Origin: Orbicella franksi
Lineage: Eukaryota
Direction of reading: 5' to 3'
Length of the DNA: 64,000 bases
Assembly (NCBI GenBank): GCA_964199315.1
Contig: OZ116707.1
Coordinates: forward strand, 1,550,001-1,614,000
Part shown: positions 50,165-58,369 of the stretch, in pieces
Numbering within the stretch: the stretch's first letter is position 1
Layout: every line of letters starts with the position of its first letter
The notes under the pieces: model-generated
Databases searched by the model: none
Seen by the model: the letters and a program-made list of their open reading frames with translations, nothing else
What the model was told of the DNA's origin: nothing
Position numbers and translations under genes: made by a program

Positions 50165-52451
50165 TAATGACAATTGTCATGTCATTGCTATTTTGCAATG
50201 ATCTTTTCAATGAATAGTTGGAGAACCTAACACTCTTTTGTGTTTCGTCTTTTTGCTTCACCTGATTATAGAGACTCTTATCAAAGCACACTCCATCGCA
50301 GAAACCATTTGCACCTTGAAACTTAAAGTTGAAATATGTATAATTATTGTGGCTCGGCTTTACTGGCAAAGTATCATGAATATATCCAGAGATTGGAACT
50401 TTCTTTAGATGATCACATTCCTTTGTATCTCCATCAAACTGTTTATTCAGTTGACCTTCACTTAAAGATGCTGCAAAAAAAGAGAATAAGATTTCATATC
50501 ATTCTTTTACTGGCTGTTTTAAAACTTGGATATTCTAAAGTGCTGGCAGTCTTTGATGTTTTAACCATTTGTCTTAAAGAAACTGAGCTAAATTGTTCCA
50601 TGCTGCCACTCATTCTAGGCCTATCAGCAGACTGAGTTATTACTTTAGCATAATTTACTCAAATGACTATTTGCCAGCGCATTTGGTAATCACGGTTTTG
50701 GGTAATGTCATTAGTTGTTAGGCGAAGGCCTGTAGCTATTAACGGATCTGGGACATTAAAGTTTTACATCGCCGCCAATAAGGAGGGAACACTGCGTTAA
50801 CTTGAAGGTTTAATATACGACAACTTGAATCAATGGCGAGCACATGGAACAGACTTAGTCCAGATGTGCCTGTGCAGCACTAACAACAGCTGGGTACAAT
50901 GCAATAACAACACATGTTCACTATAATTGGTACTTGTTCAAAATAATTGGGACTAATTGGTGTTAGTGGTTATTGCTTGTTATCACGTTAGAGCCAATCA
51001 GGATCATGCATTTTTATGGCCCACAGAGTCAATAATGTTATCTGCTAACAGGGCAATTATAACCAATGAGTGGTTTGTTATTCAATAACAGGATAACAGA
51101 GAATAACAACTTTGTGTTAGGGGACAATATTAGTCAATTCCACCAATAACACGCTCACAGGATGCAAACATCTGCACAACCTGAGAAGATGCTGAAAACT
51201 TCAAATTTAGAGGAAAAGCAAAAGGGTGATAAGCTTTAGATGTAACCATTCACAAGTTTATGACATGATGCTTTGGTAAAATTATTTTGAATCATAAATA
51301 TCATCCTGTTCATTCAATGTTTTTTTTCGATTTTAAATAAACCTGTTCTGTTGAAAAGAAAACTTTTTCAATTAGCGAAAATATCACTGGGAAAATAAAG
51401 TCCGTAGCTAAGAGAAAAGAATTATCGTGTTCTGGCTGTTAAGCGTGGCTGGAAAGGCAAGACCTTATCAGATAACACATTTCAAACATTCCTGCACGCA
51501 GTGCTATTACATAAACTTGACTTGTCTTTGGTCATCTTTCTTCTAATTGATCTACTTGCCATGTATTAAAACTATGCGACTTTGATATATTTGCGATGAG
51601 CAACTGGAATTATGTTTGATACAGTAATGACGAGTCTAAAAAAAATATATCAAAAGCTGTGTTTGTTTTGCTACTCACAACGTTAATATATAAGCATATC
51701 ACATTACATGTACGTATGTTTGGAACAATAGATCATTGAACAAGCTCAAGAGATCATCGAGTCAGCCATTGCAGACCAATTAGAGACTTGTTAGTCGATA
51801 ACAGGATAATGGTTTCCTCGTTAGTGGATAATGTTAGACAGAAATGACCAATAGCGCTAAAGGAACATGTCACGAGGCACCAGATTTTGTCCTTGAAGCG
51901 CAACGTAAACTTCCATCAAAATTATCTGCCCTTGTTTGGCTGGTGCCGATTTTTGCGGTTAAAACATTAGGTTTTAGTGGCTCTAAAGTGAATGTATGAT
52001 CCCACTAGTTGTTAACTCGGGTCTGGTACTATTTTAAAATCATTTTAAACTTATTCTGTTTTGCGCCAAAATACGATCGTTTGCCACGAAATCCCCACTT
52101 TTTCCCTCGAATAAAGAGACATGCTTTTACTATTGGAAAAGTTGTCTCTCGTCTAAATACTCTCCACATATTCCAGCCGTGCGCAACAGCAATAACGCCA
52201 AAACAGATCGTAAAAACACAACTTTATTTGCTATCGTGTGCTCACTGGAGGCCGCACGGCCCATGACTCAAATATCTACAAAGGGAAAGTAAAATATGGT
52301 CACGAGAAAAATCTAGGCGAAAAACTAAGAGGGTACCAACGAGCATCCATAGGATGAAAAAACCTCGCCGCGCTCGCTGCGGTAATGCAGAGGAAAAACC
52401 CCAGCCCTATGGATAGAAACCCTCCAACCTGCTAGGCTCGGTCTTATTAAA

Positions 52452-53450
52452 TTAAATTCCTAATGATTTCAAGACTGAAAGTAGGGACTGAACATTGTCT
52501 TTAACATAACCATCTTTGGCATTTTCACTCTGCCAACGACCGTGTCTCTTAAAAAGTCTATCAGCGATGCCTGCATTGGCAGCAGCTGTGGCTCCTCCAG
52601 CCCTGAGACTGTGAAGACTTATGCAGGAAACGTCAGTAATGTCTTTGAAAGCGTCCTTAACGATCTCCCTGGCTCTGCTGTAGCTTAAGCCTTGACGTCG
52701 AACTTTAGATGTACATCGAGGAGACAAGAGGGCTCTGAATAACGGTAAATCCTCACTAAGATCAATTTCAGCGGCAGCAATGTATTGCTCTAAAGCCTTT
52801 ACAGGACAGGTTTCCAGGTCTGATCGCGCTATTGTTGTCCACGCCCCATCACGGTATTGGTCTGTCTTGGACGACTCTAAAAATATGGACACATAAGTAG
52901 GAAAAAACTTTATGTCACAAGCTCGAATAGAGCATAGCTCACTGAAACGAAAAAACCCAGCATATCCTATGAGACAAAGCTACTGTTCTCAAATCCGATA
53001 AGGAAGGAGACTTATCTGAAATCTTGGAGGATGCAAGCGCCCTCAGCATCTCGGGAGTGATGGGTTCTTTCTTCGATTTAGCCTTCCCCAGAATCCTTTG
53101 AGATGCGCTAACCATGGCAGAAACCATAGGATGCACCGAGACCTTGGGCAAACCGGCCAGCTGTTGGGCCCAGTCGATACTGTAAACAGCATTAAGAACT
53201 GGAGAAGGAGAATTAGCTTCCAGGATTAGGCACTGCAGGTAAACTGAAACTTGAAAGGGGTTGGCAGGCATGTGGCGAATACAATTAGACGACACCCAAA
53301 ACTTCCAACGTCTAAAACCAGCCAGGTAAGTGCAAATAGTGCCATCAGCTCTGGAAGCGAGCACAGTTTCCTGGACTCGACTAACCAAGGGCTGGAGATG
53401 GTCGGGGATAGTGGCAAAGAATTCGGTCCACATCTCTGATTGAAACACAT
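52452..53450 (-). pseudogene. Tyrosine recombinase of the DIRS element, one frameshift
   Basis: LASRADGTICTYLAGFRRW, KKEPITPEML, frameshift ~52985, GFFRFSEL (R), SKTDQYRDG, HSLRAGGAT (HxxR), HGRW, GYV (Y); strong splice acceptor at 53451-53452. Confidence 0.9.
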
Positions 53451-53579
53451 CTAAAATCAAAATAAAACTGACCAGCAAATTAGCAAAATAACAAAGAAAA
53501 ACATGACGTGAACAAAAAGGTAATAGCAATACAAAAAAGACATAAACGGGCTCGAGAAAGAGCCCAAAAAATACGTCTC

Positions 53580-54070
53580 GGCTACACAAATAGCTACCCA
53601 CTTTCGCCACAAAAGAGCTTCTATATATCGGGCACAGATCGTCCCATACTTCATGGTGGCACACAGCCCAACCATTTGGATACAGAAAGACCTTAATTCC
53701 CAGGGCGCAAAAAACAAAAGGGGGGCACAGATGGTCCCATTCATTCTCAAGGGCAAACAAAGGCCCCTAACATTTGGGCACAGATGGTCTCATACTTCAT
53801 GTAGGCACACCGGCCCTAACATTTTAGATACAGAAGTTCCTGAATTTTTAGGGTGCAAAAAAGGCCCCATTCTTCGGGCACAGATGGTCCCACTCATACT
53901 CATGGGCAAGCAATCTCCCTAACAATATAAGCCCAGAACGTCTCATACTTTTCGGGGGTAAAAAACCTAAAGTTCAGGCACAGGTGATCCCATATTCCTA
54001 GGGAGCAAGAAAGGCCCTACCTACCAGGCACATGTGGTCCCATACATCTCGTGCACAAATAGGCCCTAGA
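53580..54070. repeat. Degenerate ~50-bp tandem array with core GGGCACAGATGGTCCCAT
   Basis: Cores at 53630, 53723, 53776, 53876, 53976 and 54026, with a partial core near 53930. Confidence 0.8.
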
Positions 54071-54503
54071 ATCTAGAGCTCAAAAGAACGAACCCTAAAT
54101 TTTTGGCCCTGATAGAAATAAATGATAAATAAATAAACGAATAAATCACAAGAAAAAGAGAGTAAAAATAAAAATAAAATAAAAGCAAGTCACCTCCAGA
54201 AAAGAGCACCAAGAGGACGAATTAGCATAAAACCACTCCTAAATACCCTGTTCAAAACCCCTAGAGAGTTCATACCGACGAGAGAATATTTTTCCGCTAA
54301 TTTCCAAACCGCGGAAAAATTCTACTCTCGTCTAAATACTCTCCACATATTCCAGCCGTGCGCACAGCAATAATGCCAAAACAGATCGTAAAAACACAAC
54401 TTTATTTGCTATCGTGTGCTCACTGGAGGCCACACGGCCCCAAGAGTACAAAGAAAGAAAAAAAAGGACAACAAAACCATATAAAATACAAGAGGAAAAA
54501 CTT

Positions 54504-56783
54504 TCAGACAAAATGGATTCTCAAAGCAAGCATCCTAAAGTTTAAATTCTCATTACCAAAGACGCTATTACATCTACCAGGAATGAAAGCTTCTTTTAAA
54601 GATGGAAGATCCATCCAGTCAACAATAAAATCGGAAAATTTATCGCCGCCGGCGCTAATCATTGGCCAGAAGGGAGCGGAATGCCACAGCGGAACAATAA
54701 GAGTCCCTGATGCCTTGCAGTTACGCATATGAAGTAACACTCGCGGAATAAGGCAAATACGCGGACATACATAATTGTTCTCCCCTGCCCAGTTCATAAT
54801 GAATGAATCAATTCCTTCCGAGCCTGGATTCCAAAATCTAGAATTGAACCTCGGAAGTTTGGCATTTAAATAATTAGCAAAGCGATCGAAAGAGTGCGGA
54901 CCCCAAACAATATCAATGTTTTGAAATGTATCCCACAAAAGACCCCAGTCATCGGGATCGTAAATGCGGCTGAGAAAATCGGCCTGGTCATTCTGAGATC
55001 TAGGGATCCATTCCATCTCGATCGAAATACCGCGATGACAACAAATGTTAAAAATCGACAAAGCTTCAGTCTGCAAATGACCTTTACTGCTGCCAGATGA
55101 AATGATCCTGGGAACATTCTGATGATCTGTAAACCATTTCACAGTCAATCCTGACAACTTGTCCAGTAAAGAAAGAAGAACAAATTTAACGGCCAAAATT
55201 TCTCGCAAAGTAGAACTGGTATGCATTTCCTTTTCGGACCAAGTGCCAGACACAAAATCCTGACCGCATTGAACGAAATAGCCACCAAAACCAGTGTCAC
55301 TTGCGTCAGAATAAACAACGCCAACAGCACTTGACTTGGGCGACATAGGCTTGCCATTAATGGAGTCGATGTTGTTCTACCAAAATAAAAGCTCATTACG
55401 AATCTCAAGGGACACGTCCAAAGGCTGATCCCAGGAGGTTCTTTGCTCTAGGGCCGCATAACAATTTCTTGTCAACAATCTAGTAATATTACCGACAGCA
55501 CACGACATAGAAATAATTTGCCCCGTAATTGAAGCAAGACCACGGGCTGAAAAACTACTTTTTTGAAGACAGGAAGCAATGGAGGATTTCAGCTTGAGAA
55601 TACGCTCTTCGGGAATATGAATCAAACCGTGTTGGAAGTCCAAAACCGATCCCAAGAAGACTAACTTCTGGACAGGTTCCCAATTTGATTTTTCGTCATT
55701 AGCTGTAAAACCGGCCAAAGTCAGGTCCTTACGAACTTGAACACTAATGTTTTCGGCACTTTCGAAAGACAAATTTCCCCCGATGCCATCGTCTAGATAC
55801 ATCAAGGCTAAATGGCCGTGAGCCCTCCAGAACTTAACTAATTGACGTATGACTTTTGTAAAAATATACGGCGCTGAAGTTAAACCAAAAGGTAGCACTT
55901 TAAACTCGTAGAAATGCATTACGCCATCGACTGAAGGCCATTTGAACGACAGAAACTTCATATGTTCTTCACAAATGTCAATGTGATGATATGCCGATTT
56001 GAGGTCGAAGGAGAAGACAAACATCCCAGGCGAAAACATTTGAAGAACAGTTCTTAAATCTTCATACTTGACAGCTTTTTTGACAACAAATTTGTTTAAA
56101 TGAGACAAATCTAAAATAAGTCTTAACTTCCCTGAAGACTGGACAGCGACGTGCAGCGGATTACAAAATTGAGGGTATTCCTGAACTTCCCTTACACAGC
56201 CACGTGCCATCAACTCTGAAATTGCCTCCCGAACAAAACTATCCCTACGAAGGGCGGAAGATCTATTTTCAATCGAAAACGGTAAAGGCGATTCCATAAA
56301 AAGAATCTTGTAACCATTCTGGATAATGTCTAGAACAAAGTCCAAAGCCTGGATAGTATCACGCCAAAATGTGAAGTTCGCATGCAGTTTTCCTTGAGTA
56401 AAGCTGGATGCCTCGATATCCTGTTCAAATTCGTACTGATCCAAAAAATTAAGGTTTTGATCCTGAAGACAACGGTTTGTCTTTGGTGGGGCACATATTG
56501 GCCCAGTGTCCTCGTTTACCACATCGAAAGCACATGTCAAGGCCTCTGAATGAGTTGTAAGGGTATCGACCTTGGGGACGAAAATAACTAGTAGCTGGAG
56601 GAAAAGAGCTAAACGTACCGCCAACTCTGGAGGCGCTAGAAGATGAAAGCGCAGAAGAGGAACCTTTAGGACTAGTTTTCCTCTTTTTCTCTTGCAGTGT
56701 TTTGATCTTAGCGGCAGCTCTTTTCTCGGCTTTTTTAATCTTCGAAGCGTCGGCCTCGTCGTCGGCCAAATCGTCGCAAACAT
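54504..56783 (-). pseudogene. DIRS pol: reverse transcriptase, RNase H, N6-adenine methyltransferase-like domain; one nonsense mutation
   Basis: KLRLILDL, FDLKSAYHH, LPFGLTSAP, YLDD (RT); TAG 55377-55379; YSDASDTGFGG, REILAV, FTDHQN, NDQADFLSR (RH); DRFAN...FNSRFW...DSF..NW (MT). Confidence 0.92.
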
Positions 56784-57173
56784 ACTCTTGCACTGTAGCC
56801 CAACCGAATTCAGATTTGTCGGCCAATTTAATAATTTTTTGCCTATTATTTAGCAAAGAAATACCTTGTTAAGCTCTTCCTTGGCTTTAGGAATATTTCC
56901 ACCTTCCAGGGCTTTCAGGGCCAAATTACTCGTATTGGCCACTTTGCGGTTGAAACTAAACTGTTGCTCGTTTCCTTTCTTCTTGAAGACGTAATTGTTG
57001 GGCTGAAGATCCGTCACAATTTGAACCGCTAAATCAGACTGGGCTTGAAGCAGGTTGGTCTGAAGTCCTTGGATCTCGGAGTTAACGGCTGATAAAATTG
57101 CATTCTTCTGGGCATCTAAAACAGCACTCAGTTCTGGAGAAATAGAGGTGCTGGCTCCTGCTGAGTCTTCCAT
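56449..57173 (-). pseudogene. DIRS gag with CCHC zinc knuckle, one frameshift
   Basis: FKKKGNEQQF, frameshift ~56860, RQKIIKLADKSEFGWATVQEY, CFRCGKRGHWANMCP; its 3' part overlaps the start of pol in another frame. Confidence 0.88.
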
Positions 57174-58369
57174 AAGGATGAGAGCAACACAAATAAAAGC
57201 GAGTCACCTCCAGAAAAGAGCACCAAGAGGACGAATTAGCATAAAACCACTCCTAAATACCCTGTTGAAAACCCCTAGAGAGTTCATACCGACGAGAGAA
57301 TATTTTTCCGCTAATTTCCAAACCGCGGAAAAATTCTATTTTAAATAGATTAAACAATAAACAGTGGAAACATTAGCTTTTAGCAGCTCTGATGTGAATG
57401 TATCATCTCTATGATTGTTTACTTGGGTCTGGAACTTTTTAAACGCTAAAATCGTTTTAAAACTTGATTATTCCATTTTGCACCAAAATACGGTCATCTG
57501 TTGCGAGATCCGTGCTTTTTTCCTCAAATAAAAAGACATGGCCATGCTTTTGCTATTGGAAAAGGCGTTATTCAAATGTGTTTGTTCTGTTCTGAATTTG
57601 TTGATTAAGAGAAGTGCATGTCAATTTAACTATATATTAAACTCACCTCTGTTGTTTCGTGTGAAAGTGACCATGAAGCTCAAAGGAAGCCGAAGTCTCC
57701 TCTTATATAATCGATTTTTGCCTTTCAATGTTCCCATTCAGTCTTAAGTTCTCTGCCTCTTCGCACTTAATTATATTGTATTTTTCCTCTTAACTGTACT
57801 TTTTTGAGTTTCTGTTGGAAGTATTTCATTTGTTGACCATTGATAGGCAACCGATCCCAGACCCTCACGAGTTTGCATGCTGAACTGCAAAGCGAGAAAA
57901 CAGTCCCATGGGTGGTAGGGTGAGTGTGAGAAAAGGCGGAGGAGCGTCGGGTGTCTTAAAGATGTTATTTACCAGTACAGTCCACTGAAATGTGACAAAA
58001 TAGTTTTATTTCACACTCCAAATAAACTGTTCCTTTACTTGACATTTTTAGCTGTAAATTAAATACTTTTTATTTAAACTCGTGATTGGCACCGAAAAAT
58101 TGTACATATGAAGCATATGGGTGCAACGTCAGTTGAGAATGATCCTTTATTGTTCTATTCATGTCTTGACGGCGATACTTTGAAAAGTGAATTAGGGGTG
58201 AGCCCCAAACCCATCGCATGGGAATTTGACCCAAGGTCAACGACAATAACATATTGCAAGTTCCGCTTTCAACTGCATTGTTGTCTAGATGTATACTTCA
58301 AACTGTTCAATGGAAATTATTTTTTTTAGAAATACTTGGATGAAAAGCTTGAAACCTGTCTTTGATTAA

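Follow-up and report, generated by a model that had tools for sequence, protein, structure and literature searches.

The DNA analyzed here, referred to as the window, is a stretch of 64,000 nucleotides from the stony coral Orbicella franksi (assembly GCA_964199315.1, contig OZ116707.1, positions 1,550,001 to 1,614,000 of the forward strand); positions given below without a contig or locus name are counted from its first letter. The minus strand of the window carries a tyrosine-recombinase retrotransposon built around two kinds of direct repeat, termed A and B. Its parts are arranged in the order A1, gag, a pol gene with reverse transcriptase, RNase H and methyltransferase-like domains (RT/RH/MT), B1 joined to A2, a motif array, the tyrosine recombinase (YR), and B2. 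Read in the sense direction, the features of the element are as follows.

57191-57338, minus strand: A1, the 5' terminal repeat of 148 nt, which starts TAGAATTTTTCC and has a conserved TATA-like box about 80 nt in
56449-57173, minus strand: gag, which encodes a CCHC zinc knuckle; sister copies with an intact frame give 241 aa, whereas this copy is split by a frame break
54504-56783, minus strand: pol, encoding RT and RNase H followed by a Dam-related, MT-like domain; it overlaps gag in another frame, and sister copies with an intact frame give 759 aa
54325-54440, minus strand: B1, the internal copy of the 3' repeat, with a conserved 22-nt block at its start, AATAAA, and the end GACGAGAG
54177-54324, minus strand: A2, the internal copy of the 5' repeat, which abuts B1, the B1-A2 joint being the putative circle-junction template
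53434-54176, minus strand: non-coding stretch from A2 to YR, with an AT-rich part followed by six copies of a 17-nt motif (53630-54042)
52452-53433, minus strand: YR, Cre-like, 327 aa in unbroken sister copies, with the catalytic residues R-H-R-W-Y
52146-52263, minus strand: B2, the 3' terminal repeat, of which 52146-52262 is the repeat match to B1

A repeat search of the window returned A1 and A2 as a 148-nt direct repeat of 99% identity, and B1 and B2 as a direct repeat of about 116 nt with approximately 96% identity. B1 and A2 are contiguous, with zero bases between them, and gag begins 18 nt after A1. No inverted repeat pairs were found by this search in or around the element, and hence no inverted terminal repeats of the DIRS1-like kind. 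Repeat search and gene matches together bore out, base for base, the coordinates and order of parts given in a preliminary description of the locus. The element is real and well delimited; its layout has already been described, and what is new is this member of a known group.

For the domain content of the family, unaltered translations of sister copies were scanned. Gag gave a match to zf-CCHC (E 4e-6), the Gag zinc finger by which Pat1 is distinguished from Toc and Kangaroo. In pol, RVT_1 was matched by the RT region (E 4e-15; 55380-56783), and 54504-55346 encodes RNase H, with a match to RT_RNaseH, and the C-terminal MT-like domain. This last domain is of the DIRS type and makes up the C-terminal 150 residues of the pol ORF. 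It has no Pfam match itself, and residues 607-677 of pol are colinear with part of a relative, P0118, of 43% identity; that part scores 30.8 bits against PF05869 (Pfam Dam), above the cut-off of 28.1. The YR of an unbroken sister copy matched PF00589 (E 4.8e-8) and could be aligned with Cre over the full length, the catalytic residues R, H, R, W, and Y all being in place. The named database relatives are uncharacterised bivalve proteins with approximately 42% identity. The earlier identification of a tyrosine-recombinase retrotransposon with an MT domain therefore stands: the element is of the DIRS order and PAT-like, and the MT-like domain is present. All three genes of the window copy are broken. 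Gag has a frame break near 56856-56865, pol is interrupted between its RT and RNase H parts by an in-frame stop (55377-55379), and YR has a frame break near 52940-52975; these three lesions were absent from the preliminary description.

The whole coral genome assembly (497 Mb) was then searched for further copies. Seven full-length copies, the window copy included, were found on different chromosomes; they are 97-98% identical and all have the same layout. Full copies share their first bases, TAGAATTTTTCC, and their last bases, GACGAGAG, and have unrelated flanks, so that copying by segmental duplication already looks excluded. One of them, L006, measures 5246 nt. No target-site duplication could be seen at the ten insertion sites examined, and the 5' flank ended in AA at 8 of these 10, an A-rich 5' flank being preferred. 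Across the family, in all seven full copies, A1 equals A2 and B1 equals B2, which fits what the replication model discussed below requires at insertion; the A1/A2 and B1/B2 mismatches of the window copy are private to it. The tree of the copies is star-like with pairwise distances of 0.9-2%, pointing to one recent burst. The sequence was also present in 20 public runs from 12 studies, 14 of them RNA runs, with hosts labelled as coral or coral metagenome. The element family is both young and transcribed.

It could be asked whether the arrangement is an accident of this one locus, produced by two fused elements, a nested insertion, or misassembly. On either side of the window copy stands a repeat of 175-200 bp, which could hint at local rearrangement. 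However, the same layout and the same ends recur in six other genomic copies, which answers the check proposed in the preliminary description, and in independent metagenome contigs; moreover, the one other genomic occurrence of the flanking repeat is a tandem pair. An accident of the locus is thereby already refuted, and we assign it next to no probability. The two flanking repeats themselves (57363-57565 and 51960-52140) are approximately 175-200 bp long and 75% identical, and the only other occurrence in the genome, the tandem pair, is at C10:4505034-4505428, from which it follows that the element inserted between two tandem units. The flanking repeat was also considered as a part or a target of the element and was rejected in both roles, being present at the window copy only.

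The arrangement itself is known. Szitenberg et al. 2014 (PMC4157794) place the internal repeats between MT and YR in Kangaroo and in Pat1-like elements of the nematode form, whereas they put those of echinoderm-form Pat1 (SpPat1; also Nematostella and Lottia) and of Ngaro downstream of YR. The suggestion that the layout might be uncatalogued, which was to fall if it proved standard for described PAT-like families, was for this reason not borne out. The usual layout on which it drew, with all ORFs ahead of a clustered B1-A2-B2, is that of the echinoderm and Ngaro form only and does not hold for Kangaroo or for Pat1-like elements of the nematode form. By the structural criteria of PMC4157794, namely split direct repeats, MT, a Gag zinc finger, and a YR on the same strand, the coral family is Pat1-like and of the nematode form.

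With nematode-form Pat1-like elements (PAT of Panagrellus redivivus, CbPAT1, and relatives; PMC4157794), the coral family shares internal repeats between MT and a same-strand YR, the Gag zinc finger, and the pol order RT/RH/MT. It differs from them in its host, a coral and not a nematode, and in the motif array of about 410 nt between A2 and YR. Kangaroo of Volvox carteri, as far as it is portrayed in PMC4157794 citing Duncan et al. 2002, is alike in its split direct repeats, its MT, and the internal repeats between MT and YR; in that portrayal its YR is inverted and a Gag zinc finger is lacking, whereas the coral YR lies on the same strand as pol and the coral Gag has a CCHC knuckle. Echinoderm-form Pat1-like elements (SpPat1) have the same genes and the same kinds of repeat but in the order A1, gag, pol, YR, B1-A2, short spacer, B2. 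Related RT/RH and YR-mediated integration without target-site duplication are common to the coral element, DIRS1-like elements, and Ngaro. Ngaro also has split direct repeats, but it is without MT and has B1-A2-B2 clustered after YR, unlike the coral element with its MT-like domain and its B1-A2 upstream of YR. DIRS1-like elements have terminal repeats in inverted orientation together with an internal complementary region, neither of which occurs in the coral element. We read the window element as a decayed member of a young, PAT-like family of retrotransposons (Pat1-like, DIRS order) in a stony coral, with the nematode-form arrangement and a split-direct-repeat cycle, and put the probability of this reading at roughly 0.8.

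The same layout could be followed into relatives of the window family. Two coral metagenome contigs, L043 and L049, belong to the window family and share its layout. Two sister families that are 25-30% diverged from it, L058 (pol approximately 75% identical) and L061 (YR 65-71% identical), also have A2 between MT and YR. Its occurrence in metagenome contigs and in both sister families makes the layout a trait of the lineage and not an accident of one family. The earlier claim that B1-A2 divides the element into two units, each bounded by A and B, holds in every copy. The other PAT-like families of this genome (L031, L034, L035, and L040) are of the echinoderm form, with YR 33-44% and RH/MT up to 48% identical to the window family. 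In L034, A1 is located at 2804-2977, YR at 6519-7475, B1 at 7531-7614, A2 at 7610-7783, and B2 at 8066-8149, and the remaining three are alike. The gap from MT to YR is 360-630 nt in these echinoderm-form families versus 1077 nt in the window family. Judging from such sequence comparisons, the internal repeats probably shifted within a cnidarian lineage, and because the nearest families in the same genome are of the other form, this shift was probably independent of the one in nematodes. The coral family beside its echinoderm-form relatives fits the homoplasy view argued in PMC4157794, whereby the internal repeats have changed place on more than one occasion.

More distant relatives were also noted. 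At G000 C10:24544000-24573500, at least 5 YR and at least 10 RH/MT matches lie on one strand within 29 kb, at a spacing of approximately 6-7 kb. They belong to another PAT-like family, with 35-39% identity overall and 69-75% in the last 55 YR residues, and may be head-to-tail units. Three loci, L015-L017 (G000 C2:34.34, 38.68, and 32.77 Mb), hold old, stop-riddled relatives with 67-84% DNA identity in pieces, in which the gap from MT to YR is approximately 970 nt and the start of B is kept directly after pol. No A2 was recognized in these loci, which are too short to show ends; they may represent an older family with the same layout.

A replication model for split-repeat elements is summarised in PMC6681497, layout and model are also treated in PMC4157794, and experimental support has been obtained in the related DIRS-1 (PMC7192593). 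Applied to the coral element, an RNA would start inside A1, end inside B2, and then be reverse-transcribed. The B1-A2 junction would restore the missing end sequences and act as template for a closed circle, which the element's Cre-like recombinase would insert by crossing over at the B-A junction, leaving no target-site duplication. For such a cycle the position of B1-A2 along the element would be irrelevant.

Conservation among the three families was examined for A and B. The first 55 nt or so of A and the end of B are conserved across all three. In A, a TATA-like box about 80 nt in is followed, approximately 30 nt downstream, by a conserved block; in B, a 22-nt block is followed by AATAAA, which reads AATAAG in the L061 family, and the 3' end is conserved too. 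On sequence grounds, these blocks would fit a promoter role for A and a terminator role for B, and they agree with the replication cycle outlined above. The block with which B opens, approximately 22 nt long (window 54415-54440 and 52237-52262, and likewise L061, L047, L064, L058, and L056), is almost invariant, in families otherwise 25-30% diverged; it contains a small GGCC...GGCC hairpin and sits just upstream of the poly(A) signal. The first 65-150 nt of A were also seen to recur at L018-L030 with 75-86% identity and the same starting base (e.g. G000 C15:536703, C7:13348106, C6:20487014, and C7:12756879). These A-like modules are embedded in at least three other multi-kb repeat families and have no gag, pol, or YR within 1.5 kb, for which reason they were rejected as solo units of the window family; they may represent a promoter or recombination module held in common, or else relatives that are non-autonomous.

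Between A2 and the YR start codon, a distance of 743 nt, the 17-nt motif occurs in six copies spaced by approximately 50 or 100 nt, against a chance expectation of 0.05 copies. The number of array units differs between copies of the element, and the array was not called by Tandem Repeats Finder. A hairpin array was considered and rejected, as the folded RNA is no stabler than shuffled sequence (z 0.13).

As proposed in the preliminary description, the element might instead comprise two transcription units: an A1-driven gag-pol mRNA would end at the poly(A) signal of B1, an A2-driven YR mRNA would end in B2, and a rare read-through RNA would serve as the genome. The promoter-like and terminator-like blocks can be cited for this, in that A2 is identical to A1, the TATA-like box and the block approximately 30 nt downstream are kept across three families, AATAAA (or AATAAG in the sister family) follows a strongly conserved block in B, and gag begins just 18 nt past A1. 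Contig depth in run X13 points in the same direction, with 331 over YR versus 23-30 over gag/RT, although depth in poly(A) libraries is 3'-biased and contig depths are rough. Three raw poly(A) RNA runs yielded 0, 15, and 8 reads, too few for calling starts or ends. The 23 raw reads of X23 and X24 all fall on YR or gag/RT, with none on the 2.4 kb between, as two units would have it, but no loose poly(A) ends turned up at B1. One RNA-library contig crosses from B into A, which tells against separate units, though its sequence is explained equally well by the internal B1-A2 junction and by a junction in a circle or tandem. Also against them, contigs L043 and L049 show no splicing along their course from pol, across B1-A2 and the array, to YR; these assemblies may derive from RNA or DNA. 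Furthermore, an mRNA started in A2 would have a leader of approximately 750 nt with upstream ATGs, among them the first codon of a 74-codon ORF extending over the YR start. Two transcription units are thus a tentative proposition, which we judge to be somewhat improbable.

Two other candidates were considered. A spliced YR mRNA, with a donor in A and a strong acceptor just before the YR start codon, is unsupported, as the GT that resembles a donor, close to where A ends, is not kept in the sister families; no skipping joint for such an mRNA was seen in the RNA data, which hold few raw reads. A joint in run X13 that "goes back 5193" was rejected as evidence of a circle, its sequence being identical to the internal B1-A2 junction.

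The preliminary description had also predicted that YR-only and gag-pol-only sub-elements could arise, and only the former were found. Three independent solo A-YR-B units (L008, L009, and L010) are present in this genome, with exact A and B ends and unrelated flanks; the three solo loci lie at C14:15.40 Mb, C1:39.46 Mb, and C10:16.05 Mb. A fourth solo of the window family occurs in metagenomes (L048/L051), and the L061 family has two, L047 and L064. No gag-pol-only unit was found in the genome, where pol copies of more than 90% identity are the seven full elements only; the difference between three YR-only units and none of the other kind is not significant. The solos are no monophyletic group: each occurs once, the closest full-length copies differ from solo to solo, L009 has a 53-bp indel in common with full copies L005 and L006, and in most solos the YR frame is broken. 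Since they do not cluster and mostly carry a broken YR, the solos are best explained by repeated deletion of the interval from A1 to A2, and from their sequences they look like by-products. Loss of this interval leaves an A-YR-B unit with exact element ends, which is a consequence of where B1-A2 is placed. Such units could form by template switching between direct repeats during reverse transcription, by ectopic recombination after insertion, or by resolution of a two-junction circle by the recombinase.

Other derivatives were encountered alongside the solos. L012 (G000 C14:15738382-15739290) is an inverted duplicate of the 3' 900 bp and flank of solo L008 (C14:15403813-15405995), approximately 330 kb away, and is a segmental duplication of part of L008 and not a new insertion. 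In the L061 family, the coral metagenome contig L052 (1150-3385) has a piece from the 5' part of gag fused to the array, with YR and B following; from this internal-deletion derivative it can be seen that deletions do not always use the A repeats. A sister-family contig, L056 (6880-8695; coral metagenome contig Ga0126343_10001668), holds a 5'-truncated YR unit followed by B joined to A and the gag start, a head-to-tail arrangement, either tandem or permuted. In L045 and L062 the truncation falls almost where it does in L056, but the flanks are different.

The solos admit more ambitious explanations. With B1-A2 between pol and YR, the replication circle carries two B-A junctions, and the element's own recombinase might resolve it into a gag-pol circle and a YR-only circle, the solos then being integrated YR-only circles. 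We consider this unlikely; if true, the element would be a retrotransposon giving off a Crypton-like DNA element, and would represent a living intermediate between the DNA transposons and the retrotransposons that use YR. Alternatively, the element might be a cointegrate of a gag-pol retro-module and a Crypton-like A-YR-B DNA element, with the solos as that DNA element moving alone as a circle. The recurrence of solos with exact ends and unrelated flanks in at least two families, the count of three YR-only units to no gag-pol-only unit, and the head-to-tail joining of YR-B to A-gag in L056 together with the possibly head-to-tail cluster at C10:24.54-24.57 Mb, as expected from recombination at element ends, would all agree with a cointegrate. 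However, the solos form no clade and lie singly near different full-length copies, most have a broken YR frame, the three-to-none count is not significant, and the same products are explained by deletion between direct repeats. A cointegrate origin accordingly appears doubtful to us.

The reading that we prefer, a nematode-form PAT-like family with a split-direct-repeat cycle, has several points to set against it. The single-transcript picture explains the approximately 10-fold higher X13 depth over YR by 3' bias only, and the reading as a whole gives the motif array between A2 and YR no role. The data fit all three of the solo-making routes alike. Every step of the cycle is carried over from the published split-direct-repeat model, and structural criteria are the basis of the Pat1-like placement.

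Knowledge of how PAT-like elements work is unchanged by the coral family. The recurrent recombinase-only units are the most interesting residue of the analysis and offer a concrete handle that can be tested by PCR. The family adds to the stony corals a young, transcribed, multi-copy PAT-like lineage with an arrangement so far described for nematode PAT and Kangaroo, and the presence of both arrangements side by side in one genome provides a natural setting in which to ask what the placement of the internal repeats does.

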